A stretch of 63,651 bases of DNA, filler included, from Salisapilia sapeloensis CBS 127946 (lineage: Eukaryota; Protista; Oomycota), in the NCBI GenBank assembly GCA_023334545.1. It is 9 parts of 9 records of this genome, joined end to end, with 100 filler letters (N's around TTAATTAATTAA, not from the genome) between each part and the next. Parts side by side here need not be neighbours in the genome. Positions count along the whole stretch, not along the records: positions 15,514 to 38,556 come from JAADVB010000270.1; 8 more parts are not named here. One strand, given 5' to 3'. A program made the translations under genes and the position numbers. This document shows positions 1,024-37,529 of the stretch, piece after piece. The notes beneath the pieces were generated by a model that worked only from the letters and a program-made list of their open reading frames with translations, searched no databases and was not told the DNA's origin. Positions within the stretch are counted from its first letter, which is position 1; each line of letters opens with the position of its first letter.

Positions 1024-3712
1024 ATGGCCCAGAAAATCTGGCAACGAGCAGAGGAGTCGCTAGCGGCGCCAGGCGTCCCGCACTCCTTCCAACACGTAGA
1101 TGAAAACAAGAGCATCGCAGACATACTGCGCAGTCGAGAGCTCGGTCGCGCGAGCACGGGCAGACGACGCCACGTACGTGACAACGGGAGCAAAGTCGCT
1201 AGTGAATGCCACCCAGAGCACTACTGGGCAGAAAACCAAAGTGCCACTAAGGTAGCGTATACATCTACCTACTGACTCTTCCGTCTTCGATGATACTAAC
1301 GTACGACCATATATCCACAGCATGAAAGTCGGTACTTTGAACTACCCCAATCGACTAAATCGACTATATCCATCGCCATCAGCCCCGACGGGTATGCATC
1401 TCTTCTGATCTACATATTATTCACCTACCTAACGTATTCTGTCGGATAGAAAACTGTTTGCATCTACCCATGGAGACCACACGGTCAAGATAATATGCTT
1501 AGCCACGGGAAAAGTCATTCAGGTACACTTGAAGACAATTCGATAGTTGACACCTTTAATGATATATTTTACCATGATAGACTTTGGTTGGCCACCCACG
1601 GACTCCCTGGAGTGTCAAGTTCCACCCAACAAATCCTCGCTACGTCGCTTCCGGCTGTCTAGGTTTTGAAGTTCGGTACGATCTAGCCCTTGTTGTATAT
1701 TATTTCTATCTCGACTTATCAGCATGCGTAGATTCTGGGATGTATATACTGGTCGATGTCTGTATGTGCACAAACTGCGCCACGCCATCATTTCCATCTC
1801 CTTCCACCCATCAGGCGATGTGCTCGCCATTGCTAGTGGCACTTGCGTTTACACGTGGGACTATCAGGTACCAGCCTTCTCATCAATCCATCAAGAACCC
1901 TTGCTAAGTACATATTACAACAGCATGCAGCTCCTCGTCCTGCCATGATCAGTTCCCAGACCTTGCGCAGCGTCACTTTCCTCTCAGACCCGACCAAAGT
2001 CCTCGTGGGTGAATCCAACGAACGCCCAAACGTACAGTTACTTCCATCTCTACTGTTATACAATAAAGCTAAGTACAACATAGCGCGTGCAAGGCCAAGA
2101 GACTCCAGCGGACTTGACGGTTACCATTAGCAGATGGGACTTTGATCTGCAGTGGGCACTGAACAAGGAACCGCCGGCCGAGGCCAAGGGCCTGTCCAAC
2201 AGCCAGACAGTTCTCTCCCATGCTCTCATCTATAACGATGGTGGCATCGATGTCTCTCGATGCGGACGGTACCTTGCTGTCTGTTCCGACTTTAGTCTCC
2301 GCCAAGCAGAGGTAGAGGCAGAAGAGGCCGAACGCGCCGAAGCACAGAACGATGTGACCGAGATTATGCAGTCGTCTCTTAGCTCTGAGCCTGTGGGTGT
2401 GGAAGCTGCACCGACGTCGACAGGTGGAACGGATGCCGGTCGAGATGACGTTGATGAAGCCACGCTCCAATTCGCAACGAACTTGAACGACAGCACGCGT
2501 GGAAGGAACGTCTTCACGACGGAAGCGTTTGACGACGGACTGAACAGAGCGTACCCGAACGGAGGTGGCAGCACCTGGCCTTCGTACCAAGGTCGTACGA
2601 ACACAGACACGACGTCTGCCTTCCTCCAGCGTCTCACCCAGTCGCGGCAAGCTTACAGACGCCCAACGCATGGTGTCTTGGACCCGCACTGGGCCTCTTT
2701 TCCTAGTCTCCAGGCGCGTCAGCAGAATGACTCGAGGGACGAAACGTTTAGGAATCCATGGTCTCCTACTCCATGGCCACAGAGACATGACAATGATCCG
2801 CATGTGAACCAAGCACTGCGTCGAGTGCGTCCGAGACTGCAGCAGAACCAGTCGATTAGCCGCCGACGGATGGGCATGGAGCCACGTAGCGCCCCCATCG
2901 CCCCTCCCTCTCGCTTCGCTAGGTTCCATACGTCGAGTCCTCTGCATCGACTGGAGACGTACTATCAGACACATTTGCCTTCCTTTCGACATCGATCGCA
3001 GATGTCCCACTTCTTTGACATGTCCAACATGTCGTATAACCCGCAGCAGACGAACGCCATGGCGGCGAGAGCTTATGTGCGTGTGCCTGGTCGAACAGGT
3101 GTCCAGGCGTCTCGACGCGTGTCGAGGCAGATGCTGTACTATAATCTTACGGACGGACGCCATAGCCTTGCCATCAGCAACACGCAGCTGACGGACGCGC
3201 AGCGTGAGCGACGAACGAGGCTGGCGCAGGAAGTCCAGTCGACGTGGCTGACGCTCGTGTCGCTTGAGGAAGGGCAGCTTGGGAAGGTAGTGCAGACGCG
3301 CCGATTAGAAGGCACGGCTGCGGGGGGCGTGACGTCAGTCAAGATCTCTCCTTGCAGCGGGTATGTGCTCCTTGGGTATGGCGTGAGAGACCGTAGGCAG
3401 CGAGAGAATGAGTTCCGAGTGCACCGAGTGACGAGGATCTACCGGTGGGACGACCTATCGTTGCAGTCGCATGTCGAGAGCGAGATGGACGACGTAAACA
3501 TCGCCTTGTTTAGCCCCGTGGCTGGCGCTGGCTTCCTCTACGGGACCAAGCAAGGTAAGATTCGAGTGTGCACCATGTACCGTGGCGGGTATGGAGATGA
3601 AGAGAACTGCAACGTGAAGGATGCTGCTCGTCGACGTCATTTCGACGGAGGAGAGGCCGTGGATGAGGATATGATGGAGGTGGAGGAAGAGCCGTTGGCG
3701 GCCGAAGAGTAA
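1024..3712 (+). CDS. AMBRA1: AMBRA1-like split WD40 protein, multi-exon
   Basis: Spliced exons give [57 protein letters not shown], matching the AMBRA1 N-terminal WD40 blades. A long disordered insert follows, then C-terminal blades ([18 protein letters not shown]; [24 protein letters not shown]). Introns include 1252-1320, 1392-1449, 1523-1580, 1676-1731 and 1868-1923. ATG at 1024 is inferred. Confidence 0.88.
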
Positions 3713-3820
3713 CGCGAACGTAAAATAAGCTGTACGATGACGCGATTGGTTTCGCTCTTTGATTAATTGCTTAGTCGTTTCCGAGCTAGTTGCTTCATGT
3801 TTGAAGAATGAAGAACCAAT

Positions 3821-4351
3821 TCACTTTTGTTTTCGTTTCCGCTGCTTTGTTTGTTGATGCGCTTTGTTGATGAGAGCCTTGGAGCTGGATAAGTCATCCA
3901 GATAGATTTGCTTGGGTTTACCGGAATTGGCGACTGTGAAGACGGTCGGAGAGAGTTTGCGGAGCTTGAATCGCTTGTAGATGGATTTGCCGGACGGGAG
4001 CTTTTGAGAGCAATCGAGGACGCCGACGTTCATGCTTGCTGCTAGCTTCGGAGCCGCGTCCTGGAAAACTTGAGGAATGACGTCGTCTGGGGAACTGCAT
4101 AGCAATGTCCACGACTCACCGGATTTAAAGACTTGCTGCATGACCACCTTATCGGAAACATCGAGACGCTGCATTACATCGGTCGAGTATGAGAATTGGA
4201 GGATCGTGCCGAAGAAAAAGGCAAAGAGGATCACACCGACGGCGAGGATCGCGTGCCAGTAGTCTCTCCACATGCGGTTCTTCAGGAACATCTTGAGCTC
4301 CTTACCATCGCTCGTGCCACCCTCACGGCTACTTTTCGCCTTTCGCCCCAT
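3821..4351 (-). CDS. Single-pass membrane protein with a thioredoxin-like fold region, no CxxC (176 aa)
   Basis: ATG-started intronless ORF: basic N-terminus, hydrophobic helix (AILAVGVILFAFFFGTIL), then a VGVLDC thioredoxin-like strand. Tail-to-tail with AMBRA1. Confidence 0.6.
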   Translation of the reverse strand: MGRKAKSSREGGTSDGKELKMFLKNRMWRDYWHAILAVGVILFAFFFGTILQFSYSTDVMQRLDVSDKVVMQQVFKSGESWTLLCSSPDDVIPQVFQDAAPKLAASMNVGVLDCSQKLPSGKSIYKRFKLRKLSPTVFTVANSGKPKQIYLDDLSSSKALINKAHQQTKQRKRKQK

Positions 4352-4901
4352 GGATACGCGCTACTCGAAGCGCAGCGGATCTTTGGGTGAGGTTAGTGCT
4401 CCTTCGAACATGATGTCGTTTGAAAGGACAAAATAACTTGAACGACTCGGATTTGGTAACTTCGATGGAGCAAAAAGCTGGGTTACCAAATCAAAGGAGG
4501 CGCGAATCCAGCAAGTGTATCTGCTTTCTACGCACGCACAAGCTGGGTACAATTCTTTTGCTGGATTCTTCTTGCTATTCTGGATTTTCACGTGTCGACA
4601 ACGTTGGCAGCGTACGATACAATGAGATGCTTCTTCACATATTGCTGATTGGCGTCAGTACCATGTCGAATAGGCAGGTGCGTATTGCTGCGAAGCATAA
4701 AGTACCCTGATTACAGCATTTTGCTGTAAACATTCCAAGCGCATTAGATGTGGATGCATGTCCTCTCATCTAACATCCAAACACTTCAATTTATGATATT
4801 TTCAGTCGATGCAGATTAAGTCAAGTCAGCGAGGTATCATTTTATCTGGTCCAGAATTTATGGCAAGAAGGAGCCGAAAGAAGCTATGTATGAGACAGCA
4901 C

Positions 4902-5042
4902 AGATCGCTATCAGTGTTCAACACGGACAATCACGCATACAATGCTTCTGAAGGGTCTCGAGAAGCGGAATGTCGGTGGCGTCAGTCAATACTCTATCTC
5001 TAGGTACGGGTACAGTTCATGTACTATCAGATCGTACATCGC
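4902..5042. repeat. C1 right terminal inverted repeat arm (141 bp)
   Basis: Exact reverse complement of 1-141. Confidence 0.97.
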
Positions 5043-5142
5043 NNNNNNNNNNNNNNNNNNNNNNNNNNNNNNNNNNNNNNNNNNNNTTAATTAATTAANN
5101 NNNNNNNNNNNNNNNNNNNNNNNNNNNNNNNNNNNNNNNNNN
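5043..5142. other. Artificial contig spacer N44-TTAATTAATTAA-N44 (also 10531-10630, 12892-12991, 15414-15513, 38557-38656, 39730-39829, 52324-52423, 62279-62378)
   Basis: Identical 100-nt block occurs eight times; TTAATTAATTAA gives stops in all six frames. Confidence 0.99.
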
Positions 5143-5283
5143 CAACTTCACGCAAGTGCTGACGGCCATGCTCGTGCTCCCGCCGACGATGGCGTACGCG
5201 GAAGCGACGGCGCCGCACACGATGGACACGCCGGTACTCATGATCGGATGTGGCGTCATCCTGTACCTCATCACGACGTTCCT
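5143..5283. repeat. C2 left terminal inverted repeat arm (141 bp)
   Basis: Exact reverse complement of 10390-10530; mismatch at 5284 versus 10389. Confidence 0.97.
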
Positions 5284-5680
5284 ATAGGTGCACCTGGTGG
5301 ATAAGGAATGGAAATAGGAGTCGAGATAAACGAACGCAAGTTTAAGAAAGCAAATGGAAATCTTGATTGTTAGAGACTTAAAAATAGTAGAGGAAGAATG
5401 GAGAGTGGATATCTGTCTTTTTGCAAAGCTTCTCGTCATAACGCGCAGCGTAATCGGACGATGTCGGCACTTATTATCTTCATTATCCACAAGGTTTCCA
5501 TTCTTCCTTTTGGACAGTTGGAAGGACTTGAATGTCGAGAAACTAGAGTCGAAAGAAGAGAATTGGAAAATGAGAGCTAGAAGTGACGATGCAGTGGAAG
5601 ATATAGTCTTTAATCAATCTTGAAAGGACCGGAAGGAACATTTACAGAAAGCTATAAACGGGGCTTCTTGATTGCAAGAC
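5284..5680 (+). mobile_element. Degenerate Merlin/IS1595-family transposase remnant
   Basis: Broken frames read IGAPGG*GMEIGVEINERKFKK (compare IGGPG..VEIDESKF), NRTMSALIIFIIHKV (compare DRSA.TL..II) and LLDSWKDLN (compare ISD.WK.Y), in the expected order. Stops and frameshifts present; no TIRs identified. Confidence 0.4.
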
Positions 5681-6194
5681 GAGTCAGCAGCTCATGCGAT
5701 CGCAATTGTCACAAATGTACAAGTAGTTGTATGGTCTAGATCCAGCTACGCAACCATATAGCGCCTGTCATTGAACGTGTTTTAAAGTAAAGCCACTTAA
5801 GCCGCACCATCCGTAAATGGATACTTCTTCACGGTTGTCGACACCAGTTGCGTCATGACGAGCTCTGGATAAGTTTATATTTTAACAAAGAAGTACACTC
5901 TAGACCAAACGCTCATGCAGCATCTATTAGGTTAAACGGTAGACAGTAAAAGCATGCACGACAAGAGTATCCCGACTAGTTTCCAATGGTAATCTCAGTG
6001 CTCGTACTAATAGTAATCTCGGTACTGAGACGATACGCATGACCGTAAGGTTCATGCCAAGCACGTTCCTTCCGGTCGGTACTTTACAGGTGCTTAAGTC
6101 AGTACCTCGTCGCCAAAATATTAGAAACGAATCCGAAAGAAAAAGTATTTTCTTGTTAAAATGTTTTGTATTCAACACTTGGCTCTTCACCTTT

Positions 6195-15937: not shown

Positions 15938-16501
15938 ATGCTATCTCCGTGGGAACGCGTTCGACCTCAGCGATGGCACGCAGATGCTGCATTCGAGTCC
16001 TCATTGCAAGACTTGGAGCATATGAGTGACCACATGAACCAATTGGGCAACCCATTCTCTCGCGACCTATGGGCAGACACGGGCTTTGATTCCGATGACG
16101 ACTTCTTTGCGGACTTGCCTATGCACAAGGTAAGTGGCAAGAAGCAAAAGACCGAGAGTGACCAGTCGGCGTCGACGGACTCGGATGATGATCCGGAAGG
16201 CAAACGCGGATACTCGAGCTACTCGTACAGCAGCTCATCTATCATGGACGACAATGGAAAGCCTGTCAAGAGCACGCGTCGCCACTACACGGATTCTCGC
16301 GGTCGTATGAAAGCTATTCACGATCGCGAGTACAATGGCAAGAAGCTCCGATCTACGTGGCACCGTCGAAACAAGGATGACGAAGGTACGTACGAGACCA
16401 TTTGCTCGGACGGTACGCCGGAAGACTTTGAAAAGCTATGGTCTGGCACGGTCTTTGGTCAGAACGATACGAAGCGGATCCAAGACAAGGATTCGGACTA
16501 A
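15938..16501 (+). CDS. Myeloid-leukemia-factor-like small acidic protein (187 aa)
   Basis: ATG ORF with SYSYSSSSIMDDNGKPVKSTRRHYTDSRG, an MLF-like beta-hairpin pattern; intronless. Confidence 0.55.
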   Translation: MLSPWERVRPQRWHADAAFESSLQDLEHMSDHMNQLGNPFSRDLWADTGFDSDDDFFADLPMHKVSGKKQKTESDQSASTDSDDDPEGKRGYSSYSYSSSSIMDDNGKPVKSTRRHYTDSRGRMKAIHDREYNGKKLRSTWHRRNKDDEGTYETICSDGTPEDFEKLWSGTVFGQNDTKRIQDKDSD

Positions 16502-16571
16502 TACAAATGATTTTTAACCCAACGATGATTTCCTTACAGTCTCCTACTCGTACTATGGTTACAAGTACATC

Positions 16572-17812
<1,241 letters not shown>

Positions 17813-17863
17813 CCTGCTAATTCGAAAATACCGCTTATAGGATCGAGCTGACGCCTCAAGGTG

Positions 17864-17899: not shown

Positions 17900-17991
17900 A
17901 AGTATTTTTCATCTGATTCGTGGAAATATGATTGAAATTTAACCAATCAGCATGTGATAGATATAACACGCTATTTTACGACACGATCGGC

Positions 17992-19830
17992 ATGTTGGGT
18001 ATTAGGAGATCAGTGGGAGCGCTTGTGCGACGTACTGTAGCTCAACGGAGTACGCATCGATATGTACATACGTCCCAAGTGGTCTTGCAAGCTATTGGCG
18101 GCAAACGATTGACTGAATCATCGGAAACGATGCTCTTACAGCAGCTAACGGAGGCTATGGAGGATAAGCCGGACGCCAATGATGCACAGGATCCTTCGAA
18201 AGACCGACGTGCCTTTGCAGGTACCATCATGGATGTGAAGAACCACATTGCAACGGTGTCAGGACTACGTAATGTTACCATTGGTTCTAGCATCGCTATT
18301 TACGCCAAAAATGCTGCAGACGAAGAGAAGTCTCCCGTCTGTAGTGGCATCGTCCTGTTTCTCGGAACGCATGAGACTCAAATCGCTTTATTTCCACGTG
18401 ATGCAGCCATCGAATCTGTGAGAAACGTATCACTAGGTATGAAAGCCGAGATGGTAGCCAAGCATCTCGAGATCCCTGTGAACCCCGTCCGTCTCACTGG
18501 CCACGTCATCGATCCACTCGGCAATGTCATCGACATGGGCACAGCACCTAAATCTGACCAACCAGAGCCAACGGATGACTCTCTATCATTAGCATGGGGA
18601 GCTAGCAACATCCCGTCTATCCACCAACGTACGTCCTTCCAAGAGCCATTCGAAACCGGCATTTCTGCCATCGATTGCTTCAAACCACTTGCATTCGGAT
18701 ATCGATTTGGTATCTACGGACCGAAGAATACGGGCAAAACTAGACTCGTACTAGACATTCTTGCGAGGCACATCCAACAAGCACAGGAGCGGAAGCAAGA
18801 GGTTCCACACATTGTCTACGTGTGCATCGGGAAGACGTCCCAACGTCTCCACCAGGTCGTCGATCTCCTGAAACAAGCTGACGTACTACAACACACGACT
18901 GTCATATCAGCAGATGACCGTAGCTCCTCCATCCTGCAGTTTCTCGCGCCATTCACTGGCTGCTCCGTCGCCGAATACTTTATGCGCTTGGGTAGTCGCA
19001 AGAGCATCGTCGTGTACGATGATTTGGCCACGCACATCCAGGCAGTCGAGTCTCTTGTCCAATCCATGCAGCTCCCAAGCGCTTCGACGCTAAGTCTCTG
19101 CGGCCACGCCGTGTTGATGGAGCGCTCTGCACCTCTTGTCGACGAGACTTCGGGCGCATACGAGTCGCTTACATCCTTAGTCCTTGCCGATACACCGGAT
19201 GATCATAGTGACGAAAGCGCAGAGATCGTCGCGACGCAAGGCAACGCCGACTTATTCCGTGAACGCATGATGTCGATCGTAGATGACTCGATTGTCCTCT
19301 TACGACGTCTCGCGAGGGAACGAGTGTACCCTCCATTAGACGTGTGTGCTCCAGGCGGATCGATTCGTGGACCACCGTTCCAATCGACTATGCTCTGGCG
19401 ATGCGTCCGGACGTTGCGTGCGAGACTGAACACGTCGTCGCAAGTCCAAGCTGCTGCAACGGCTGCAAGTGAGCTCGGACTCGAAGTGGAACCAGAAGCA
19501 GCGGAAGTCATGGACTATCAGGATCTCGTGCGAGCGTTCTTTAAAGAACAGACACTCGTGCGACGTACGGACGTGGAGAAGACGCTCGGTGTTTTCTTCC
19601 TCGCGACAGTTCCGACTGGTAAACTGCCCCCAGGTCTCGACTTTCTCAGTTTCTTGAAAGAAGCGAGTGAAAGGTTCATGAACGAGTATCCGGAGGTTTG
19701 GCATGCGATTGAGACGCATTCGACTACGGAAGAATGGAGTAAGGAGATGCAGGATCAAGTGTCAGAGACCTTGTTGACGTATCTCAAGGAGCATAAGACG
19801 GATCCGACACCAGCTTTTACACCGTGGTAG
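17992..19830 (+). CDS. Divergent F1-ATP synthase alpha-subunit paralog with predicted mitochondrial presequence (612 aa, intronless)
   Basis: Alpha-type motifs IATVSGLRNV, GHVIDPLGN, PFETGISAIDCFKPL, Walker A GPKNTGKT, VYVCIG, LQFLAPFTGCSVAEYF, Walker B IVVYDDL and ERSAP. N-terminus MLGIRRSVGALVRRTVAQRS is Arg-rich and acid-free. Confidence 0.85.
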   Translation: MLGIRRSVGALVRRTVAQRSTHRYVHTSQVVLQAIGGKRLTESSETMLLQQLTEAMEDKPDANDAQDPSKDRRAFAGTIMDVKNHIATVSGLRNVTIGSSIAIYAKNAADEEKSPVCSGIVLFLGTHETQIALFPRDAAIESVRNVSLGMKAEMVAKHLEIPVNPVRLTGHVIDPLGNVIDMGTAPKSDQPEPTDDSLSLAWGASNIPSIHQRTSFQEPFETGISAIDCFKPLAFGYRFGIYGPKNTGKTRLVLDILARHIQQAQERKQEVPHIVYVCIGKTSQRLHQVVDLLKQADVLQHTTVISADDRSSSILQFLAPFTGCSVAEYFMRLGSRKSIVVYDDLATHIQAVESLVQSMQLPSASTLSLCGHAVLMERSAPLVDETSGAYESLTSLVLADTPDDHSDESAEIVATQGNADLFRERMMSIVDDSIVLLRRLARERVYPPLDVCAPGGSIRGPPFQSTMLWRCVRTLRARLNTSSQVQAAATAASELGLEVEPEAAEVMDYQDLVRAFFKEQTLVRRTDVEKTLGVFFLATVPTGKLPPGLDFLSFLKEASERFMNEYPEVWHAIETHSTTEEWSKEMQDQVSETLLTYLKEHKTDPTPAFTPW

Positions 19831-19870
19831 GAAAATAAAAAAGCACAAAGCAATGTTTTGGTAGCAAATC

Positions 19871-22144
19871 TTACTGCGTTTTAAAGTCTACATGAATAGT
19901 TCCTTCTGCAGCGTTAAAGGCAAAGCTCGACTCGAGCTTGTCGACTTTAGATGGCGGGAGGAATCGAACCAGCTGCTTGGCATGCACCACGGCAGGTCCA
20001 GTCGCAATGACATGAGTGCCGTCCTTGTCTAAAGAGTATTCCACCCACACGACCACGCCATTGGCAGTCGGTGGGAGTGGACTTGTCACTTGGTTCTGGA
20101 CACTGTGTGCCTTGTCGGTAAAGTTCCATCGACCGAGCTCAATCACGTCCGACACAGCTTCGTGCTCGTACATGTACACTGGGAAAGGGAAGTTTCGGTT
20201 GTAGTACTCTTCCTGGAAAATATCAAACGAGCTATGGTCAAAGCCACAGACTTGTCCGACGGCACCGAAACACTTTTGAAGGTGCGTGAACTCGACTGCC
20301 TGAGCACATACGCGAGCAGATGCAGGTAGCACAGTCGCATCAGGACTGAGTAAGTGGTCGACAGCGGATCGACGTAGCCAAAAGTTAAGCGCTTGCCATA
20401 GTGGCAAGTTCTGCATCGAATAGTAGAACGGTTCGGCTACGAGCAAGTCTACAGGTTTCGATGTATGGAGGTGGTCTAATACTAGACCTTGGCAACCAGC
20501 ATGCAGGACTTCACATTGTTCTGAGAAGCCATTTGCTTGTAGGATCTGATCATAGACACGAGCAGATACATCTTTCGACTCTATCGAAGTAACATGTTCT
20601 ACGCCTCTAGAAGCTGCAAGCAAAGAACAAAGAGAACCATCACTGACATCAAGACACGAGATCGGAGTGCCAGATCCACGAGCACGAAGGCTTTGAACAG
20701 CATCCGAGATGGCACTGTCAAACTTCTGTCGTCGATCAGAGTTGGTAAGCATGGAGATTCGCTCTGGGTTACTGACAAGGTGGAGGCCACATGTACACAT
20801 GAGCGGAGACTCTCGACTGTTCTTGGTGTCCGAGTGTGCAAGATCAAACCAAAGTCGGATGTCGTCGTGGGTGGACTGGAGCATCAAGGAATCGTTTGAT
20901 GAGACGCTAATAGAGGAAGCAAGTGGACAGACGACTTGTACCCAATGGTCTTGCCAGTTCTGAGCATGAGCTCGTGTCGAGTATACGATTTCATGCTCCT
21001 TGTCGAACACAACTTCCCACCAGACAAGCACAGCGTGTGCCGTTCCGTCAGTCGTCGTCAGCATCGTATGGCGAGACGTACGCGCACTGCGCTCTTGCTC
21101 ATTCTTCTTGGTAAAGTCAAAAGAAAGTATTTTTGCAGGCTCCGTCAGCAGTTTGGTCGAATCATGGAAAGCAGCAATATGAAGTGGAATTGCAGGTCGG
21201 CCTCCCGTGCATGCTGTCACGTCCTTGTTATCAACATTCATGTCTCGAGCGAGACGAACGTGCTTGTCGTTCAGTTCTAGATCTGCCGCAGCATTCAATC
21301 GATACAGCGTTTCATTCTCTACTACTTGTACAAAGACATTGGCATGCTCAGGTACGATGACAGCATTCTCCACGAGCAAATGCTCCTTTGCATGGCGGAG
21401 TGTAGGCAGGACAGCTTCTCCGAGTAAAGCTGAATCAAAGAGCTCAGATACGAGCATATCGGCGCGTTGGGGCAAGTGTGCATTGGGGTCGTCACCAACA
21501 ACTAAGTCAGTCGACTTGCACGGGAACACGGTGATCCTGTCGTCCGGGAAATTGTGTTTGGTAACCTTGGTGGCGACTTGAGCCATCGGCTCGAACATTT
21601 CGCACGCGTAGACGTGCTCAGCTCCATGACGAGCTGCGAGCATCGACAATAAGCCTGTACCAGTACCAATATCTAGTACAATCGGCTTCCGTTCATGAGT
21701 CTCAATAAAAGCAGAGATAGCTTTGTGTAAAGCTCGCGAGTAGCATTCGTTTCGGTCATTATCACGCAGCATGGAAGTCATTTGGGACATCGCCATGACT
21801 TGGTTATACGTGCTCTCGCGACTATCCTCCGGTTCGATCCACATGAGTCCTCCGGCAGCTGGATTCAGCTGAGCTTGCAACAGAACCTTGGACGAGCCTT
21901 GGACAAGTGAAGCTGGGTCCTCGTCATCTTCATAGTACTCATATGGAACGTCCACAACGACAGTCTCTTCAGCCGCCGCAGTCTCAATTGCGTCTTCCAA
22001 TGACACCCCAGGTGCATTACCAGGCGCCGAAGTGCCTTCTCCAGCAAGACCACCGCCGTACTTGTCCACGCCAGCGTACATGATCTCTTGGCCAACGAAA
22101 CTTTGTGGTCCACACTTGCTCTGAAACTCCTCAAGATCGTCCAC
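19871..22144 (-). CDS. PRMT7: Protein arginine N-methyltransferase 7 (tandem methyltransferase modules)
   Basis: SMLRDNDRNECY, VLDIGTGTGLLSMLAARHGA, YACEMF, double-E loop SELFDSALLGE and QDHWVQ; degenerate second module (CLDVSDGSL, LVAEPFY). Confidence 0.93.
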   Translation of the reverse strand: MDDLEEFQSKCGPQSFVGQEIMYAGVDKYGGGLAGEGTSAPGNAPGVSLEDAIETAAAEETVVVDVPYEYYEDDEDPASLVQGSSKVLLQAQLNPAAGGLMWIEPEDSRESTYNQVMAMSQMTSMLRDNDRNECYSRALHKAISAFIETHERKPIVLDIGTGTGLLSMLAARHGAEHVYACEMFEPMAQVATKVTKHNFPDDRITVFPCKSTDLVVGDDPNAHLPQRADMLVSELFDSALLGEAVLPTLRHAKEHLLVENAVIVPEHANVFVQVVENETLYRLNAAADLELNDKHVRLARDMNVDNKDVTACTGGRPAIPLHIAAFHDSTKLLTEPAKILSFDFTKKNEQERSARTSRHTMLTTTDGTAHAVLVWWEVVFDKEHEIVYSTRAHAQNWQDHWVQVVCPLASSISVSSNDSLMLQSTHDDIRLWFDLAHSDTKNSRESPLMCTCGLHLVSNPERISMLTNSDRRQKFDSAISDAVQSLRARGSGTPISCLDVSDGSLCSLLAASRGVEHVTSIESKDVSARVYDQILQANGFSEQCEVLHAGCQGLVLDHLHTSKPVDLLVAEPFYYSMQNLPLWQALNFWLRRSAVDHLLSPDATVLPASARVCAQAVEFTHLQKCFGAVGQVCGFDHSSFDIFQEEYYNRNFPFPVYMYEHEAVSDVIELGRWNFTDKAHSVQNQVTSPLPPTANGVVVWVEYSLDKDGTHVIATGPAVVHAKQLVRFLPPSKVDKLESSFAFNAAEGTIHVDFKTQ

Positions 22145-22235: not shown

Positions 22236-23994
22236 ATGGGTGAGCGTGATGGTCTTCTCGACCGTGACAAGAGACATCAGTCCGAGTATGATTCGTTACG
22301 AGCGGAGCTGGAGAGGTCGTGGTCAGATACGGATAAAGCTCTGGAGCTAAGTATCGGAGAGGTCGTGACACCGGATGAAGAAGCCAATGCAAGCTTTAGC
22401 TGGTCGACGTTATGGGCATACGCTGGCCCGGGATGGCTCATGTCCATTGCGTACGTCGATCCTGGAAACTTGGAGAGTGATTTACAAGCAGGTGCGTATG
22501 GAGGATACCATCTCATCTGGGTCCTCTTCGGATCCACCGTCCTCGGGTTCTTCCTGCAGGTGCTAGCAGCTCGACTTGGTGTGGTCACTGGACGAAACTT
22601 GGCTGAAATGGCCACGATAATGTACCCTCGTTGGGCTTCACTGACACTCTGGATCATGACCGAGATCGCCATCATCGGAAGGTAGTCTATCCTACAGTAT
22701 TTTAGGTAGCTACACGCTAACATGGAGTGTGGACACCATTTAGTGACATCCAGGAAGTCTTAGGCTCAGCCATCGCATTTAAAATCCTCTTCAACTTCCC
22801 TCTCTGGATCGGATGCTTGGTACGTCGACACTTTCGCCTTCATAAAGCTTATTCTAACTCCCGTCTTAGATCACAGGACTCGATACTTTTACTTTTCTAC
22901 TACTACATCGCTACGGCATTCGTAAACTAGAAGCCTTCTTCGTCTCACTCATCGCCATTATGCTCGTGTGCTTTGTCGCGAACTCTGCACAAGAAGGTGT
23001 CTCACTTACGGCACTGGCAGGTGGATTCGTACCTCGCGTAGAGCCATACGCTGTTACACAGGCCGTAGGTATCCTCGGTGCAGTCATCATGCCACATAAC
23101 ATCTTCCTCCACTCGGCACTCGTCCAAACGCGTCGAGTGGATCGTCGAAACTACGCCAAAGTGCGTGAAGCGAACAAATATTTTGCCATCGAATCCGGTG
23201 GCGCGTTGCTTATTTCCTTCTTTATCAATCTAGCTGTCCTCACGGTCTTTGCCCAAGGCTTCTTCTCCCCAGACTGTACTCCGTCATACAAAGAGGATGG
23301 ACTGAATACTGCCTGTGTGCCGGGAGGTACTGCTTTTGGACCATCCTACGGCGACTGTGTCCTGGCGAGTGATGTCCATGGACAAACGGTAGGTCAATGC
23401 CAAGCCATCGGTCTCTCGCAAGCTGGCTCGGCACTCAGTGGTATGCTCGGATCATACGCTGAGGTCATTTGGGCCATTGGGCTCTTGGCAGCCGGTCAGA
23501 GCTCTACCATGACAGGCACATACGCCGGCCAATTCGTCATGGAAGGCTTCCTTGATCTACGCATTGCACCGTGGAAGCGAGTGGCACTTACGAGATGCGT
23601 CGCACTCGTCCCTGCGCTGATTGTAGCGGTGGCGAGTCAGGAGCATCCAGCCGAAAGCGATCGACTAGACGAACTACTTAACGTCCTACAGTCGATACAA
23701 CTCCCATTCGCACTGCTACCTGTCCTCGTGTTCACTAGCTCAAGTGAGATCATGGGCTCGAACTTTGTCAACGGCTGGAAGACCGTAGCACTAGGCTGGT
23801 CGCTCGGGCTACTCGTCTGCGTCATCAATCTCTATCTGATCGGTGTCAATCTAGAAGACTTGGCATTAAGCACCTTCAGCCTCCTTCTTCTCGCAATTGT
23901 CGGCGTCCTCTACTTTTCCTTCCTCGGCTACCTCGTCCGAGATGACTTTAAGACTGTCTACCACTGGACCCGATCCCGCATCTGTCGTACATAA
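22236..23994 (+). CDS. NRAMP: NRAMP divalent metal transporter, multi-exon
   Basis: GPGWLMSIAYVDPGNLESD, EIAIIG|SDIQEV (intron about 22683-22741), GAVIMPHNIFLHSAL, GQSSTMTGTYAGQFVMEGF, QSIQLPFALLP. Confidence 0.96.
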
Positions 23995-26451: not shown

Positions 26452-28937
26452 TTACCCTTCATCATGCTCACCACCTTCTATCCCTTCCATCTCTAAGAAA
26501 TCGTCTGCATACTCTCGTTCGTCGTCATTAAGCACTGCTTTCATAGCTTTCTTATCGCTCTTAAACACCTTTTTCACTACTGTCTCCAATGCCTTCTTCT
26601 TGTGCTGCTGTCGCTGGAAATCCGTCGTGAAGCGCTCCATGAGCGAAGGACGAGAAGAAAGAGATTCCTGTAACCGCTCCTTGTTACGTCGAATCGCCTC
26701 TCGGAATGACTTGCGCTGCTCCTTTGCACGTTCGATCGCCACTGCCTCTGCTTCCCGTAGATCCACAAACCCACCAGCATACTCATCCCGTTTCCTACGC
26801 TCTGATTCGATTACTTCTTCCTGGAGTGCCTTACTTGCTGCTTTCATCTTCAGTCTTCGTAGCTTCTCCTCGACTTCCTCTTGCTCCTTCTTCTTTTGAG
26901 CTGCCACTGTCATCTCCACTCGCTTCTTCACTCTCAGTTCATCCGCCTTGGTCGGGCGTACTCGAGGTGGTGCCCCACTCGCCATGACTTTGTCAAATAA
27001 CCGCTTAGATGCTGCTTCTTCACGATGACGCTCTTCCTCTCTCTTTGCTGCCATCCGCTGACGTCGAGCTTCCTTTCTAGCCTGTAGCTCTTCTAATGTC
27101 GCCGCGCGGCTTGTAAAGAACTCTTTGGTGGTAGTCGCGTGTTGCTGTTCAACGACACGTGCTCGAGTCTTTTGAAGCTTCTTTTCCCACTTGGAGTGAA
27201 GTGCATCAAAGTCTGGCACCGGCTTTGGACGTCGTTGACGCTTCCTCTCTTCTTCCTCTTCAGCTTCTCGTAGTTGCTGCTTCATACGGATGGTAATCTT
27301 ACCAGGAGCCACAGCGCAGTCACCTGCTACATTGCCTTCCGACCGAGTACGCTTCAGAATCATTTGAATTTCTTCAGGAGGAAGTGATCGAGATGTAGCT
27401 GATGCCATGCGTGGTGGTAACGCAGAGACAGAGAGCAGCTCAGTCGATCGTTTCTTAATTCGCTCCGATCGTTCCATCTCTCGAGTAGCTTCCGGACTGA
27501 TATAAGTACTAAGCGGAACTTCTCGAGATTGCACACGTTTTGCTGGAGAGAACTCCATATAAAGCTCCTTTTCTAACTCCTTCGTACGCTCTTCTTTCTT
27601 CTTTCGAGCAGCTTCCTGACGCTCGAGTAATCCTATAGGTGGATGGGCATTATGAGCTCGACGAAGTCGTCGAATCCGTTCCGCCTCGACTAGAGCAGCT
27701 TCAGCTTCTCGTCGTTGCTTGCTACGTACAGGAATGATGTAAGAGCATGTGTATAAGATGTTGGTACGTACAGAAGAGATTCTTACTCTTCAAAGTATGA
27801 ACATGATCGTCGTGTTTGATCTAGGTTTCCACTTCGCTCTTGAAGAGCTCTTCTCAAGTCCCATGTCTGTAGGGATGATTGTGTTTTCTTATATGAGGGT
27901 GCTGGTTTCCTCTCAATCTTCGCAGAAACGTAATCAAATACTGGGGACGATATCGCTAGCATAATTAAAAGTAATAAGATACTTATGTAGGAACATGATA
28001 AGTTATAAATACCTTCAGGGGATTGCCATTCATCCGGCTCATCAAATGGGGGAGGATCATAGTCACTCCCATCGCTTTCCTCGTACTATATCATACGCAT
28101 GTAAGGTCAGTGGTATGCAGTTCTGCTTGGTCAAACAAAGAGACTACTCCCTTACCTTGCTCTTATCATAAGGTGGTAGGCATTCGTCCCATTCATTCTC
28201 CTGTGTTTCAAATGCACCTTTCATGTCATGAAGGGCAAAAGCTTGCTTTGAAGGAGATGTAGTGTATCTTGGTGGACGCTTTCTTTTTGCTTTATCCTGT
28301 GGTTGCTTACAACTCTTTCTGTGTCGTTCCGCGTCAGCTTTCTGCTGAATTAGTTTCGACAATTTTGTTTGTTCCGCACGCTTACTCTATCGCCAGTGCA
28401 AGCGTGAGTGGTAGCCGATCAGTCGTATTATACTTTCATTGCTTACTTTACGCATTTCCTTAAGTTCTTCCAATATCCCCTGTCCAATTTCCGGGTTCTT
28501 AAGCGAGCTCCATCGCGTCTGCTTGTCAAATACCACCATATCCATGTCTTCTTCACTACTATCGTATTCGTCCATCGGTGGTGGTGGCGTGTGAAGCCAC
28601 GATCGATCGGGCTTTGGACGCTTTGACACCTGGCTTACCTCATGCGATTTTGAATGAGGCTGTCGCTTGATAGTATCAGTACCCACAAATGATCCAGGTC
28701 TCCGTACTTGTGCACTCTTGGGTCGCTTCTGTTTAGACTTTATCTCTTCCTTGATGCGTCTTATTTCTGCTTCCTACATCATCTAAATCAATATACGACG
28801 GACAAGTGTCTAGATATATCACCAGTTACCTCTGCATGCAGCTCTTCCTCGGAAACGATCCGATACCGGCTTTGGTTATTTGTCTTTGCATCAGATGGAA
28901 AAGAGATCGAAGCACCAAGGTCAATCACACTGACCAT
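26452..28937 (-). CDS. FAM161: FAM161-like (UPF0564) ciliary/centriolar coiled-coil protein, multi-exon
   Basis: RPKPVPDFDALHSKWEK, VRPTKADELR and RPSLMER are FAM161-type motifs. Upstream exons join via GT-AG introns (e.g. ELHAE|EAEIRRIKEE). The start at 28937 is tentative. Confidence 0.7.
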
Positions 28938-29099
28938 GATGTACCAGCTTTCCTCTCGTAGAAATGCTTGAAAGCTAAAAATATGTGCTGGACTGAGACG
29001 AATTATATAGTGAACATCGAAAACTGTCACCATAAGCGTTTGGTAGCGCGATATTGAAAAGGTGAGAGTATATTAAGTTGAACAATTTTGTTTAGTGCA

Positions 29100-30400
29100 C
29101 TAGTACATGATGCTTCGCACTTGTTTCGTTTGCCGAAGTTTATCGCGAAGTTTCCGCCTAGCTGCGCGTTCTGCTTCCAGCGACTGCGAGACATCCGAAT
29201 TGAGGTAGATGCTCGGTAAGGCGAGTCGCGTGGGATATTGAGACGTCTCATACTCTGAGTTGTCTTGAAATGAACTTCGGCGTCTTCTTCCAGCATCCTC
29301 CATGTCTTTCTCTGTTATCCCTTTATTTCCATCTTCCGGTTTCTCGGCCTCAAAAGCTGTTCGCGAAATTGGTTTTAACTTGCGCTCTGGTTTCTTCGTA
29401 GATTTCTCCGCAGCGACATCGCGCAGAGATCCGCCGAGATTTCCAAGTGGACCTTGGAGACTTCTATTGGGTGGTCGACTGATTAAATGTGACGAAGACT
29501 TTGCCTTCTTCTTGATTATCGGATGTGGGGAGCGCTGCATGGTCATGCTGGCTGGGTCCATCGACATTAACTCCTCCAAGGACTCAATTCGAGCCAAGTC
29601 CGCAAACACAGTCTTGAATGTATTAGCGTCGGAATCGAATATTGTCATCGTGACCCGATTAAACAATTTGAACAAGAACGATTCATAGATTTCCACACCG
29701 ATGCCAGTCGTCCAAATATCCACCTAGCACAATGCTCACGTTCAATTGAAGATAACGTAGATACTACAGAAACATACGTACGACTTCGAACAGAGCACGT
29801 GTGAAAGCTTCTTTCGTCATACCCCCCTCCTCTGTATTACCACTATCTTTCTTCCAATCTTTCTCGACGATCTGCCTTGCCTCTCCCACTGAAAACTACA
29901 CAACGCACACATCCCGTATCCTCAAATGAAAGTCTCATTACATCTATATGCAATAGTACCTCTTGTGGTGACACTAACGCCTTGTAGAACTTGATAAAGA
30001 CATCAACATACTCTGTCTTCCCGATGAGGTATGAGCCATTTCGAATAGAAGGAAACGTATCCCAGAAGTGGTAGATCGCACCAACCACGCGAGGATTCTC
30101 TAGTAACTGCATTCGACGTTGCAAATTCTCCTCTGTATAATACTCCTGGTCACCTTGCTTTCGATAGGAACAAGTCGGAGATGGCAAGCTACTCCTTGCC
30201 GTCTTGGATAGAGTATGCTGTCCTGCATCTGCTTCATGAGTGAAGAGAAGATGTAGCTGACGCCTGCTCTGAACAGTGACAGATGTCTTCACTTTGGACA
30301 GTTGCGGCACAAAGCAAGCGATAGGTCCATCTTCCGGTTTCTCCTCCGTCTTATTGCTGCGAAGACTAGCAGCATATGCAGACGGCGTCATGCCAGCCAT
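29100..30400 (-). CDS. Unknown protein with a degenerate EF-hand-like pair, multi-exon
   Basis: YYTEENLQRR..IYHFWDTF..GKTEYVDVFIKFYKAL|FSVGEARQIVEKDWKKD..FTRALFEV|VDIWTTGI..YESFLFKLF joined by two in-phase introns. The 3' end is uncertain. Confidence 0.6.
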
Positions 30401-35400: not shown

Positions 35401-37529
35401 CCTTTTTCGTGCTCGTTCGAGATATCCACACCAAAGTCGCGACTGCTTCTACAGACAACGTCCAAACAGTTGCAGGCTTACTTGATGGGCACGAGGAAAA
35501 AGAGGAGTGTAGAGGTAGCCTTTGTGCTTTGTATGCGATCTCGTCTATCTGTGTGCTGGCATGGCATGATGAAACGCGTGCCATGATTGATTTTACTACT
35601 GTCTTGCCATTAATGGTATCGTATATTGCCCGCCAGTCGATGCTCTTTCAGACAGAAGACGCTTCTCCAGTGAAAGTCACGATGCTTGCCTTGTGCTGCC
35701 TCGCGCAAGAAGATAAATACCAAGACGATGTGATTGCATCTAGTTTAATTCATCACTTGCATGAAGAGTTTATGAAAAAAGAAGTAGCCATGGATCGGAC
35801 TGTACTTGGATTGGTTTGCAACCTCTTTCGCCAAATCAGCCATGCACCAACCTTTGCCACTGTCGTGAACTCTGATAATCTTCCCATCATCCATTCCTTA
35901 TGGTGCATGCTCGTACAAACTGCGTCATCGTGTGATGATTTGGCGTCCTGCCTTGATTGCGCTGACATACTTTGCAGTCTCGCGTTTGCTGGTGCTAGTA
36001 TGCGTAAAATGCCAGACGATGCTTTCCAATCTCATCGAATAGACAAAGTGAATTCCCAGTTAGTTTCCAAGAAAAGCTTTGATTGTATCCAAGCGCTGAT
36101 GACTAGCGAACAACATTTAGAAACAAGATTGTGCTGCATTACATCCATCTGGATGCTTGCTAGCTATTCCGACAATGCAAAAGCTCTGGTACACCTCGGT
36201 GCTACCCAACTTGTTGTGGAAGAGACACGTCGTCTAGACTCGAGGAATCATGATACCATTCGATTCTATTGTGCTGGAGCACTCAACAGCTTCGCTTCTA
36301 ATGACATGGATAGCATATCTGCCCAAAGGATGATTCAAGATGGTGCAGTACCAGCGCTGGTGGCACTTGCCAAGCGTGACGACAACGTTATTCGGGATCG
36401 ATGTGCTCGTGCTCTGTCCTACCTATCAGCCCAGTCACCGAAGCTAGAGATTGGAGCTGTGATGACCGTACTCTGTGCTTCCAATCTGAATGACAGCTCG
36501 TTGCTTTCATCCACGCCAACGAGACCTCTTATTTTACTGACCAATCGGCATAAAGAACTTGTTCAATTACCAAATTTTGACATGGAGCTACGACCAAGAC
36601 TGGCATGGATGTCTTTGAAATGTCCAGGTAACTTTGACATCAGTCGACCTCCGGTGCCAGCACTTCCTCCTGCAGCATCTACAAATGGAAGCGAAGATGA
36701 TTATTTACTTGATAGTGGTGGCGGAAACGCTAGTGCATCTCGGCAATCTCGATATAAACGATCACAAAGTTTGCCTGGCAAAAACATGAAAGTTATTCCA
36801 TCACTGGATGATGACATCACAAATACTACCGGAGCAAGCGCAAGCGATAGCGGGCGGCGGCGCCAGTACATTGCTTTCCCCAAGTTGGACTCGTCTACAC
36901 CGGATATACGCAAGCCACAACCTGATACATTGAAGTTACAACGTAAGCAGGGCGTGCAAGACAGTTCCGCAGACTCTGGTCTTACAAACAAAAGCCGTGA
37001 TGAAGCTAATGAAGATAAGTTTGGCGTTGCTGATTCCTCTTCTAAAAGTAGACGAATCTCCCAGAATCACAACTCTCGACTTTCAAGTAGCAAAATTCTA
37101 TTGTCACGGTCACTTGACAGCCAGTCCTCCGACAAATCCGGTCAGTCAAAGTTATCAAGACTCGGAAGATCTAAGACGTCTAGTACAAGGTCTTTAGCAC
37201 CGCTGAAGAACTTATCTAGCAGGAGCACAACATTGTCATCTTTACAGGAAACTAAAAGCACAAGTCAGTCGGCTGCTGCGATAAAGACGACGCGATCCAA
37301 GAAAACCATGTCACGAGCTGCTTCAATGGAAAAGCTGGAAGGTGCCGTCACATTAGCTGCAGTAGCTGCGTCCTTCTCTTTATACAAACAAGCTCCAATA
37401 AAACCAGAGATACAACAAGAGTTGGTAGGCTCTACTGATGATGATAGAGTACCACAGACGATGTTACGAACGCGTAGCTTGGAGATGCTCGCGTCAACTT
37501 TTGCTCAATTACAGTCGCGAGAACGGTGA
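32448..37529 (+). CDS. Large armadillo-repeat protein (Vac8-like), 1693 aa, intronless
   Basis: Repeated ARM patterns (ALCNLSNH, RLIEEG, GAVPALVALAK, CARALSYLS) and a Ser-rich disordered C-terminus. Confidence 0.85.
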   Translation: MNNDGSSAQRRKSDIASKTQLHHKLSKHPSTDESPTHKGKKTPRRVMHSMANIHPRNARIQKAWVVESPPKQAFRPYFGDMFSTRGEYVDGILYMSRMKSELKRHLDLGPIEETPSASRSQVRQLLHSDINGGMTGRQKSNSVEEADALTSSSPCDNNDELNQPNEATQELQLREQCARTLSNWSRNVENARLMIEEGVVNSLAHLSHPYDEHTCLHCVTTMHNLSEVVELRNRIVQQGGVKTIVEIWSNTVKDEYLEFLCALTLSNFCSNMGEEERIVTDGAVGALASHGTHRPQLAMVCYSALFNLTYAREVYNRMEIVLKMFMTMVSPSHTNARRAIASNLGADDLILQALCNLSNHAAMRSRLIEEGILTSISSFIRPSMPANQHLIAYILLNLSSSKACRLDMMTRGAMKMILVVANAAHEPDTKNMLAQVLYHLSKPYENQNRMIMEGLLVIIKELCCKHDEGEDDGSDTAKVCVRILYTLSASSVCRPRLVERGVVNILATLSEKLAPSNSIQLCTLALCNFLSEEQAGMDIVQTGAITSLFALCQAPNHSLATKLLFARSLHGICSNPKTQVSVSSDEVIQALLPLMNMDADNLGVAEARAGAKKNVPVTESTRTVQAREPELKSAIRQHCVAALALLAFDTDTIQSIDDTIALDSVIAVMKAEYSNEAIHQLCCTFFSLLAYHEQHANMLARTAIDAMLERCLETSNVMSKKYCCHVIASMSCHQSCCSVLLEAGSLAVLSRMVHQHKSDAFILRLCSIALVNMSSASSLCQSLLSSGALFILSGLSNSYSEDIQNDCSKVLCHLSNLKEQEDRLVGEGTLGVLFMIAMVRAVSSETKEICLRSLVNLLVPSTVDKMIQEGTVKMLPMLSTASSQRSGDTALRLFCKLFAFETGRKAVCADYPPLKSLLDLLKAPPVTSKIAALQETLLSELVFYQDTRSRSVSAGLVEVLCAAIARIREQESEDSGCAARGLTLAFFVLVRDIHTKVATASTDNVQTVAGLLDGHEEKEECRGSLCALYAISSICVLAWHDETRAMIDFTTVLPLMVSYIARQSMLFQTEDASPVKVTMLALCCLAQEDKYQDDVIASSLIHHLHEEFMKKEVAMDRTVLGLVCNLFRQISHAPTFATVVNSDNLPIIHSLWCMLVQTASSCDDLASCLDCADILCSLAFAGASMRKMPDDAFQSHRIDKVNSQLVSKKSFDCIQALMTSEQHLETRLCCITSIWMLASYSDNAKALVHLGATQLVVEETRRLDSRNHDTIRFYCAGALNSFASNDMDSISAQRMIQDGAVPALVALAKRDDNVIRDRCARALSYLSAQSPKLEIGAVMTVLCASNLNDSSLLSSTPTRPLILLTNRHKELVQLPNFDMELRPRLAWMSLKCPGNFDISRPPVPALPPAASTNGSEDDYLLDSGGGNASASRQSRYKRSQSLPGKNMKVIPSLDDDITNTTGASASDSGRRRQYIAFPKLDSSTPDIRKPQPDTLKLQRKQGVQDSSADSGLTNKSRDEANEDKFGVADSSSKSRRISQNHNSRLSSSKILLSRSLDSQSSDKSGQSKLSRLGRSKTSSTRSLAPLKNLSSRSTTLSSLQETKSTSQSAAAIKTTRSKKTMSRAASMEKLEGAVTLAAVAASFSLYKQAPIKPEIQQELVGSTDDDRVPQTMLRTRSLEMLASTFAQLQSRER

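Follow-up and report, generated by a model that had tools for sequence, protein, structure and literature searches.

A conserved, transcribed nuclear paralogue of the F1-ATP synthase alpha subunit in oomycetes

Results

An alpha-like gene in Salisapilia sapeloensis

The stretch of DNA analyzed here, referred to as the window, comprises 63,651 nucleotides, filler included, from the oomycete Salisapilia sapeloensis CBS 127946 (assembly GCA_023334545.1), and consists of nine parts of nine records with 100 filler letters between each part and the next. The piece at positions 15,514 to 38,556 (JAADVB010000270.1) carries on its plus strand a complete gene for a divergent relative of the alpha subunit of F1-ATP synthase, hereafter the alpha-like gene. 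A previous reading of the sequence alone (the sequence-only reading) had described it as an intact, intronless nuclear copy with an Arg-rich presequence, alpha-like along its full length and heavily altered in its motifs, and had proposed an extra paralogue rather than the normal subunit. The gene and the regions of its product are listed below; domain boundaries derive from an AlphaFold2 (AF2) model and from Pfam, and the local confidence measure is the predicted local distance difference test (pLDDT).

17992-19830, plus strand: F1-alpha-like paralogue, complete intronless coding sequence (612 residues plus stop; open reading frame list, in-frame upstream stop, collinear RNA contigs)
17992-18105, plus strand: N-terminal extension, presumed mitochondrial presequence (residues 1-38; Arg-rich, acid-free; predicted disordered, pLDDT below 50)
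18109-18162, plus strand: predicted N-terminal helix (residues 40-57; L48, Q50 and Q51 family-invariant; superposes on alpha from residues 2-4 onward)
18217-18477, plus strand: predicted beta-barrel "crown" domain (residues 76-162; AF2 strands, aligned structurally to the alpha crown)
18580-19326, plus strand: RecA-type nucleotide-binding domain (residues 197-445; PF00006, AF2)
18718-18741, plus strand: P-loop GPKNTGKT (residues 243-250; fits GxxxxGK[ST])
19009-19026, plus strand: Walker B strand VVYDDL (residues 340-345)
19066-19098, plus strand: degenerate loop MQLPSASTLSL in place of LLRRPPGREAYPGD (residues 359-369)
19228-19254, plus strand: nine-residue insertion VATQGNADL (residues 413-421; gap columns in the other oomycete homologues)
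19345-19383, plus strand: counterpart of the Arg-finger segment, CAPGGSIRGPPFQ (canonical GLSVSRVGSAAQ; residues 452-464), of which CAPGGSIRG occupies 19345-19371
19387-19800, plus strand: predicted C-terminal helical bundle (residues 466-603; AF2 helices, aligned to the alpha C-terminal domain)

The frame is open from 17932 to 19830 on the plus strand; an in-frame stop (17929-17931) precedes the first ATG at 17992, and the stop codon occupies 19828-19830. As the earlier reading had noted, the N-terminus is rich in arginine: the first 40 residues contain eight Arg or Lys and no Asp or Glu. The first 40 residues of the homologues described below hold three to nine Arg or Lys (six to nine in all but one) and zero to three Asp or Glu. 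These presequence-like N-termini suggest that the window protein and its homologues are targeted to mitochondria.

Likeness to the F1 alpha subunit in sequence and fold

The window protein matched Pfam family PF00006 over residues 223-452 (E = 6.7e-30), which is also the only family in the precomputed Pfam annotation of all oomycete homologues, and the best 60 sequence matches in the PDB were all F1 alpha chains (E = 8e-30 to 2e-22). The NCBIfam atpA hidden Markov models (HMMs) aligned over residues 74-595, nearly their full length, with 152 and 142 bits. These scores miss by far the curated whole-protein cut-offs of the two models (554 bits for NF009884 and 484 bits for TIGR00962); scans of three oomycete homologues and of the marine protein P0127, described below as a sister of the family, gave 87-234 bits. 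Competing HMMs scored lower on the window protein (SctN, 82 bits; FliI, 80; V-type B, 49; atpD, 41), and Rho gave no match in the NCBIfam scan. A relative of beta, FliI/SctN, V-type B or Rho was rejected, as all of these fell below the 152 bits of atpA. Identity to canonical alpha is only 21-28%, yet the resemblance extends over the whole protein and greatly exceeds what coincidence would produce.

The AF2 model, computed from an alignment of 86 sequences, reached a pLDDT of 87.5 and a predicted template modelling score of 0.86. In a Foldseek search, the best 50 matches were all alpha chains, with template modelling (TM) scores of 0.73-0.82 (by target), and VIA-align superposed the model on solved alpha chains with Z scores of 37.5-39.3 over 460-495 residues. 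For alpha chains whose N-terminus has been resolved (human 8h9t_C, bovine 6z1u_B, yeast 7tkl_B and 6b8h_K), the structural alignments start at model residues 38-41, and therefore the mature protein would match alpha from its first residues, including the N-terminal helix. According to the model, the whole three-domain architecture of alpha, comprising crown barrel, RecA-type domain and C-terminal bundle, is kept in the window protein. In canonical alpha, the N-terminal helix contacts the oligomycin sensitivity-conferring protein (OSCP) and the peripheral stalk, and helix 40-57 of the modelled protein may bind the stalk in the same manner.

Residues kept and lost relative to canonical alpha

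As a reference we took 33 canonical alphas, in which 139 alignment columns reach a conservation of at least 90%; 53 of these are retained in the oomycete family and 86 are lost. Among those kept are G243, G248, K249, T250, Y342-D343-D344-L345, H372, L375, E377 and R378, together with the strand residues S392 and T394 and with S428, D431, P447, S457, G460 and Q464. Replacements fixed in the family are D to P244, Q to K281, R to E353, T to V430 and G to D432. The K281 column is occupied by the catalytic Glu in beta and by Gln in alpha; the oomycete family, with Lys throughout, has no catalytic carboxylate, as is the case for alpha. Further invariants specific to the family are C229, H237, the motif PG.S.RGPPFQ, W469 and, within the C-terminal bundle, an acidic motif LG.E.EPE..E (residues 495-505), in which L495, G496, E498, E500, P501 and E505 do not vary.

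The motifs quoted by the sequence-only reading were all found in place, although their degeneracy was only partly borne out. The P-loop is altered insofar as the alpha-specific D and R/Q of canonical GDRQTGKT are replaced, with the change of D to P244 fixed; however, GPKNTGKT still fits the generic consensus, and K249 and T250 are kept throughout the family. The family consensus is GPRNSGKT (GPxNxGKT), with G243, P244, G248, K249 and T250 invariant in the 19-sequence alignment and P244 and T250 each present at 97% across 30 members. The Walker B motif is intact, with Y342, D343 and D344 invariant and L345 conserved at 90%, the same as in canonical alpha. Heavy alteration did hold for the RRPPGREAYPGD loop, which is deleted or degenerate, and for the AYIPTNVISITDGQ strand, most of which is gone, leaving S..VD. 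A deletion of three to four residues at this loop is family-wide, the window protein reading QLPSASTLSL there, and the stretch between Walker B and the H-LLER motif measures 26 residues in the window protein vs. 30 in canonical alpha.

With regard to the Arg finger, which in bovine alpha is R373 within SVSRVG and points toward the catalytic site of beta, the claim of a replaced region was likewise too strong. The sequence of the segment does differ, yet R459 is invariant, as are P454, G455, S457, G460, P461, P462, F463 and Q464. R459 falls on the canonical finger column in an L-INS-i alignment and one column off in a larger alignment, so that its register is known to within one column. The features shared with canonical alpha (Atp1/ATP5F1A; AtpA, TIGR00962) are thus the fold over the mature length, the N-terminal helix, GxxxxGKT, YDDL, H..LLER, an Arg at or next to the finger column and the lack of a catalytic Glu.

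The insertion VATQGNADL lies in a low-confidence surface loop (pLDDT 66-68) and shows no indel in a second organism that is about 95% identical to the window (organism B, see below). At the other end of the protein, homologues from Phytophthora and Peronospora (e.g., P0017 and P0024) carry a coiled-coil-like tail rich in Lys, Arg and Glu (…KRKQYLRKLQERKA…) in their C-terminal 40 or so residues; such a tail is absent from the window protein and from the Achlya and Albugo homologues.

Transcription and nuclear context

Assembled RNA contigs from public sequencing runs were aligned to the window. Three runs (X1, X2 and X4) represent two samples of one study from an organism 100% identical to the window (organism A), and a fourth (X5) comes from a separate study of organism B. 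The flanking genes, which also serve as syntenic markers, are the following.

16501-17817, minus strand: 3-isopropylmalate dehydrogenase (IPMDH) gene, divergent upstream neighbour (PF00180; three spliced introns; nuclear context)
19871-22144, minus strand: PRMT7-like arginine methyltransferase gene, convergent downstream neighbour (PF22528, PF06325, PF13649)

The contigs of organism A skip the three GT..AG introns of the IPMDH gene and are therefore transcript assemblies. Single contigs from its runs span the alpha-like frame collinearly and free of gaps (17994-19861, 17996-19852 and 17991-21294, the last being a fusion of the alpha-like gene with its convergent neighbour), and thus the gene is transcribed, without an intron. 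Organism B also yielded spliced contigs, and its coverage of 18013-19800, most of the frame, contains no indels.

The alpha-like gene has a GC content of 52%, vs. about 22% reported for a Phytophthora mitochondrial DNA (mtDNA; PMC7224479). Together with the spliced eukaryotic neighbours, this places the gene in the nuclear genome, in line with the earlier description of an intact, intronless nuclear copy. A bacterial contaminant was rejected on account of the same spliced neighbours.

The IPMDH introns are very short (16991-17042 and 17164-17215, 52 nt each; 17425-17481, 57 nt) and are confirmed by spliced contigs of both organisms. A divergent intergenic region of about 175 bp separates, and is common to, IPMDH and the alpha-like gene. 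On the other side, the stop codons of the alpha-like and PRMT7-like genes are 40 nt apart (19830-19873) and the transcript contigs meet at 19852-19864, one assembly fusing both; the 3' untranslated regions must therefore be extremely short or overlap. Further genes on the piece encode a Nramp transporter, a NIF phosphatase, a mitochondrial carrier, a FAM161-like protein, a pyridoxal phosphate enzyme and an ARMC5-like protein, all of them ordinary eukaryotic nuclear genes. The Nramp frame (22960-23994, plus strand) covers only profile positions 127-355 of PF01566, and its gene probably starts on an upstream exon. AT skew is strongly negative (-0.17 to -0.28) over 26514-29513, and GC content falls to 37.5% in the last kilobase of the piece (37514-38513).

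A family present across oomycetes

A word search retrieved 35 oomycete homologues that are 36-46% identical to the window protein (E = 1e-152 to 8e-87), the next matches being canonical alphas at E = 7e-30. They belong to Pythium, Globisporangium, Phytophthora, Nothophytophthora, Peronospora, Hyaloperonospora and Peronosclerospora, and an exhaustive profile search added Achlya hypogyna (OQR84550.1; Saprolegniales) and Albugo laibachii (CCA23846.1). The family therefore occurs in every major oomycete order sampled, namely Peronosporales, Pythiales, Albuginales and Saprolegniales. In their sources, these proteins are named just "hypothetical" or "ATPase F1/V1/A1 ... domain-containing protein", and our literature search found no paper on the oomycete alpha-like family, which speaks against an already characterized one.

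The family is under strong purifying selection. Across 19 members, 108 columns are invariant, and dN/dS between Phytophthora ramorum and Phytophthora infestans was 0.087 overall (nucleotide-binding domain, 0.05; C-terminal domain, 0.06; first 60 codons, 0.31).

Synteny is partial. A second oomycete genome, which encodes the homologue P0122, has the alpha-like gene between the same two neighbours, IPMDH (divergent) and PRMT7-like (convergent), at 1931-5930 of locus L008 (GCA_003429145.1, QQTW01010200.1); there, the PRMT fragment is 57% identical to that of the window, the alpha-like protein just 41%. In Achlya hypogyna (L005; JNBR01001851.1, 3047-7549), the alpha-like gene adjoins a PRMT gene, and in Phytophthora the context differs, with a CUE-domain gene upstream and no PRMT adjacency. 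No dedicated beta-like partner gene lies beside the alpha-like genes at the loci examined (window, Phytophthora, Achlya and L008). As to gene structure, the Achlya homologue (L005, 3047-5071) takes 2025 bp for a 573-residue product and cannot be translated directly from the genomic stretch, which implies introns; intronless counterparts are found in the window organism, in Phytophthora (L003, L004), for P0122 (L008) and for P0127 (L006, L007).

The earlier statement that sequenced oomycetes encode atp1 in their mitochondria agrees with the literature: a canonical atp1 of 510 residues is annotated in Phytophthora nicotianae mtDNA, and atp1 is part of a set of 37 mitochondrial genes employed for 17 oomycetes, Aphanomyces among them (PMC5550686, PMC5093560). 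Unlike this mtDNA-encoded alpha, the alpha-like family is nuclear. Since its members occur in Phytophthora, Pythium and Saprolegniales, whose mtDNAs carry atp1, the family represents an additional copy rather than an atp1 moved to the nucleus; for the window organism itself, this status would carry over from the other oomycetes.

Phylogeny and metagenomic relatives

A tree was computed from 43 rows and 501 columns under LG+C20+F+G4. Bacterial and mitochondrial alphas formed one clan (support 100/100), within which the mitochondrial alphas of Aspergillus and plants nested among alphaproteobacteria, as expected, and the oomycete family fell outside it. Together with the atpA scores below cut-off and the coexistence with mtDNA atp1, this placement bears out the proposal of a paralogue distinct from the normal subunit. 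The family itself formed one group (97/85), in which the window protein paired with Albugo (97/83), and its sister (100/99) was P0127, encoded without introns on marine metagenome contigs, including those of Tara Oceans.

Counting P0127, some 20 clusters of eukaryote-like alpha-like proteins, which derive from metagenomes (in part Tara Oceans) and from transcriptome assemblies, likewise fall outside the canonical clan (P0127, P0129, P0132-P0144, P0158, P0175, P0177, P0181, P0195, P0210 and P0259; loci L001, L002, L006 and L007). They are 555-656 residues long, lack RRPPGREAYPGD, have the shortened loop and variable or lost P-loops, and in most cases carry presequence-like N-termini. When a profile of 21 non-oomycete alpha-likes was searched, its matches were dominated by canonical alphas, with scores of about 400 bits, and added no named taxa, as befits a mixed set without a strong signature of its own; given this match to ordinary alphas, the clusters may be several independent degenerations.

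Comparison with xATPA and other known systems

The sole literature found on comparable proteins is a preprint on xATPA, a divergent alpha homologue of about 70 kDa in microalgae and labyrinthulomycetes, for which 222 sequences are given (Penot-Raquin et al. 2026, bioRxiv, 10.64898/2026.07.08.737214). It has a targeting peptide, a defining "bump" domain of about 60 residues protruding from the central domain, a P-loop that is often absent and a conserved Arg; it is plastid-localized in Phaeodactylum and binds beta and gamma in vitro, with an affinity for beta five-fold weaker than that of true alpha. Oomycete genomes were searched in the same study, and xATPA was "never detected" there (10.64898/2026.07.08.737214).

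By its features of sequence and fold, xATPA (Chlamydomonas ATP1B; Phaeodactylum tricornutum B7FRE6) is the closest described kind to the oomycete family. Both are nuclear, presequence-bearing proteins with a divergent alpha fold in which only the central PF00006 is recognizable, both coexist with an organelle-encoded alpha and both keep the Arg, with the one-column uncertainty given above for R459. In addition, the volvocalean P-loop GP..GKTR[LV]ALD (GPGGAGKTRLALDAI, GPPGSGKTRVALDAI) resembles the oomycete GPRNSGKTR[LV]ALD[AV]I. VATQGNADL, the only insertion in the window protein, sits where SAR-type xATPA (stramenopiles, haptophytes) has its bump: this segment measures 29 residues in the window protein, 15-19 in other oomycetes, 17 in canonical alpha and about 80 in haptophyte and labyrinthulomycete xATPA, and the oomycete family has no bump. 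In further contrast to xATPA, P-loop and Walker B are strictly conserved in oomycetes and the N-terminus is of mitochondrial type.

ESM-Atlas feature neighbours of P0024, P0127 and P0137 include a 728-residue chlorophyte cluster and a 676-residue diatom cluster, both PF00006-only, with scores of 0.95-0.96. No xATPA hallmark motif was present in the best 150 matches of the exhaustive profile search or in any protein fetched; xATPAs therefore score below ordinary alphas in that search. A look-up of oomycete and metagenomic P-loop peptide variants in the sequence tables of the xATPA supplement gave no match, none of the roughly 20 metagenomic clusters has the 60-residue bump, and a word search with the P-loop region of P0009, aimed at green xATPA, returned oomycete proteins only.

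Alpha paralogues are also known from Mycoplasma, where F1-like ATPases have been recruited for gliding motility, away from the standard ATP synthase. The window protein matched the models of the gliding-motor subunit MMOB1660 (NF045863) and of MSC_0619 (NF045936) with 101 and 72 bits, far under the family cut-offs of 600 and 520 bits. Further, the Mycoplasma paralogues are bacterial and lie in operons with a beta paralogue, in contrast to the window gene, which has no beta-like neighbour. Finally, the chaperones Atp11 and Atp12 (ATPAF1/2) keep free beta or alpha subunits in the matrix until F1 is assembled; they would offer a functional analogy, for one of the roles proposed below, and have no sequence or fold relationship to the window protein.

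Discussion

Proposed role of the alpha-like protein

Taken together, sequence, structural model and analogy make it somewhat probable, in our estimation, that the family consists of mitochondrion-targeted, nucleotide-binding, non-catalytic alpha paralogues that pair with F1 beta as a regulator or assembly buffer, alongside the atp1 of the mtDNA. The window protein would be imported into mitochondria and lose about 38 residues, and would bind ATP or ADP with Mg as a structural ligand, with no hydrolysis. It could then take an alpha-type position beside the nuclear-encoded F1 beta, possibly docking to the stalk via its N-terminal helix, and act there as a beta-binding accessory, regulator or assembly buffer. 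Such a role would fit an organelle that makes alpha inside while importing beta, and would be analogous to the in vitro measurements on xATPA. Mitochondrial import, nucleotide binding and partnership with beta are all predicted properties of the window protein.

Several observations weigh against this proposal. Conservation in the family is poorest in the loop and strand with which canonical alpha lines the catalytic interface, so that any pairing with beta may have been weakened or lost. The N-terminal and C-terminal alpha/beta domains PF02874 and PF00306 were not detected in the window protein at Pfam E values up to 1. The RNA contigs start right at the ATG (17991-17996) and leave the 5' end, and with it the use of ATG 17992, unfixed. 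Moreover, an approximately unbiased (AU) test rejected a grouping of the family and P0127 with crown mitochondrial alpha (p = 0.004). Neither the tree nor this test proves an ancient origin of the family, and the long branches may have produced an artefact.

Alternative explanations

A possible, though tentative, alternative that is compatible with the beta-pairing role is that the family is the oomycete orthologue of xATPA, as a branch in which the bump was lost or had never arisen. The common design of the two proteins, their P-loops, the position of the only insertion and the chlorophyte and diatom neighbours in ESM-Atlas are in line with this, as is the occurrence of xATPA in labyrinthulomycetes, another heterotrophic stramenopile group (10.64898/2026.07.08.737214). 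However, the defining bump is absent (15-19 vs. about 80 residues at its site), the search of oomycete genomes in the preprint found none (10.64898/2026.07.08.737214), neither the best 150 profile matches nor the preprint tables provided a link, and the likeness may be convergent, arising from relaxed constraint. The broader idea that the oomycete protein corresponds to xATPA as its mitochondrial form without a bump, and that both belong with the roughly 20 metagenomic clusters to one old eukaryotic family, holding the alpha position beside imported beta wherever the true alpha is made in the organelle, is more speculative still and must be regarded as rather doubtful.

Would the protein instead be a true structural subunit of oomycete complex V, serving as one of three alphas in an alpha2-alpha'-beta3 head, or as all of them at a particular life stage? 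The full alpha architecture predicted, with a conserved N-terminal helix superposing on the stalk-binding helix, the retained P-loop, Walker B and Arg, and the strong purifying selection could all be read in this way; nevertheless, interface residues are among the 86 of 139 canonical-invariant positions lost, and mutation of these residues cripples cooperativity in Escherichia coli alpha. Since, in addition, canonical atp1 ranks among the slowest-evolving mitochondrial genes in Peronosporales (PMC5550686), we judge this unlikely. A similarly low probability attaches to a stand-alone RecA-fold NTPase or homo-oligomer outside F1, with an unrelated mitochondrial or cytosolic function. The loss of the catalytic-interface loop, the family-specific invariants (C229, H237, K281, E353, PG.S.RGPPFQ and W469) and the gliding-motility precedent of the Mycoplasma paralogues point toward it, but the motifs of the N-terminal helix and C-terminal bundle are invariant, with a C-terminal dN/dS of about 0.06, and in canonical alpha the crown, this helix and the bundle serve mainly hexamer and stalk contacts; the want of an adjoining beta-like partner gene also counts against it. 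A simple transfer of atp1 to the nucleus, making the window protein the sole alpha of its organism, appears very improbable, as orthologues coexist with mtDNA atp1 in other oomycetes and the window protein nests in the alpha-like clade, shares its degenerate motifs and scores 152 bits against a cut-off of 554. Finally, the degenerate motifs, and nothing more, would suit a pseudogene, a nuclear insertion of mtDNA or a chance frame, an explanation with next to no credibility that is refuted by 612 intact and transcribed codons, the overall dN/dS, a GC content of 52% vs. about 22% and the 108 invariant columns.

Significance

Divergent alpha paralogues as a kind were already known; what is new is a conserved, transcribed and so far undescribed family of them in oomycetes. 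Oomycetes include major crop and animal pathogens, their respiratory chain is already a fungicide target, and a lineage-restricted relative of alpha would add to their energy metabolism a part or accessory that is still unexplored. Work on xATPA has been confined to a diatom plastid, and the oomycete family offers a bump-less version that retains its P-loop. The published absence of such proteins from oomycetes needs qualifying, and the role of non-catalytic alpha paralogues becomes a testable question in culturable and transformable heterotrophs (Phytophthora, Pythium). The family also bears on whether xATPA-like proteins track plastids or organelle-encoded alpha in general.

The finding is thus relevant both to ATP-synthase evolution and to oomycete biology. 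If the alpha-like proteins did form one old eukaryotic family, F1 heads of asymmetric alpha2-alpha'-beta3 composition could be envisaged, or else a pool of beta-alpha' intermediates under regulation. This would amount to a new layer of control over F1 assembly or activity and, in oomycetes, to a conserved, lineage-restricted protein associated with complex V.

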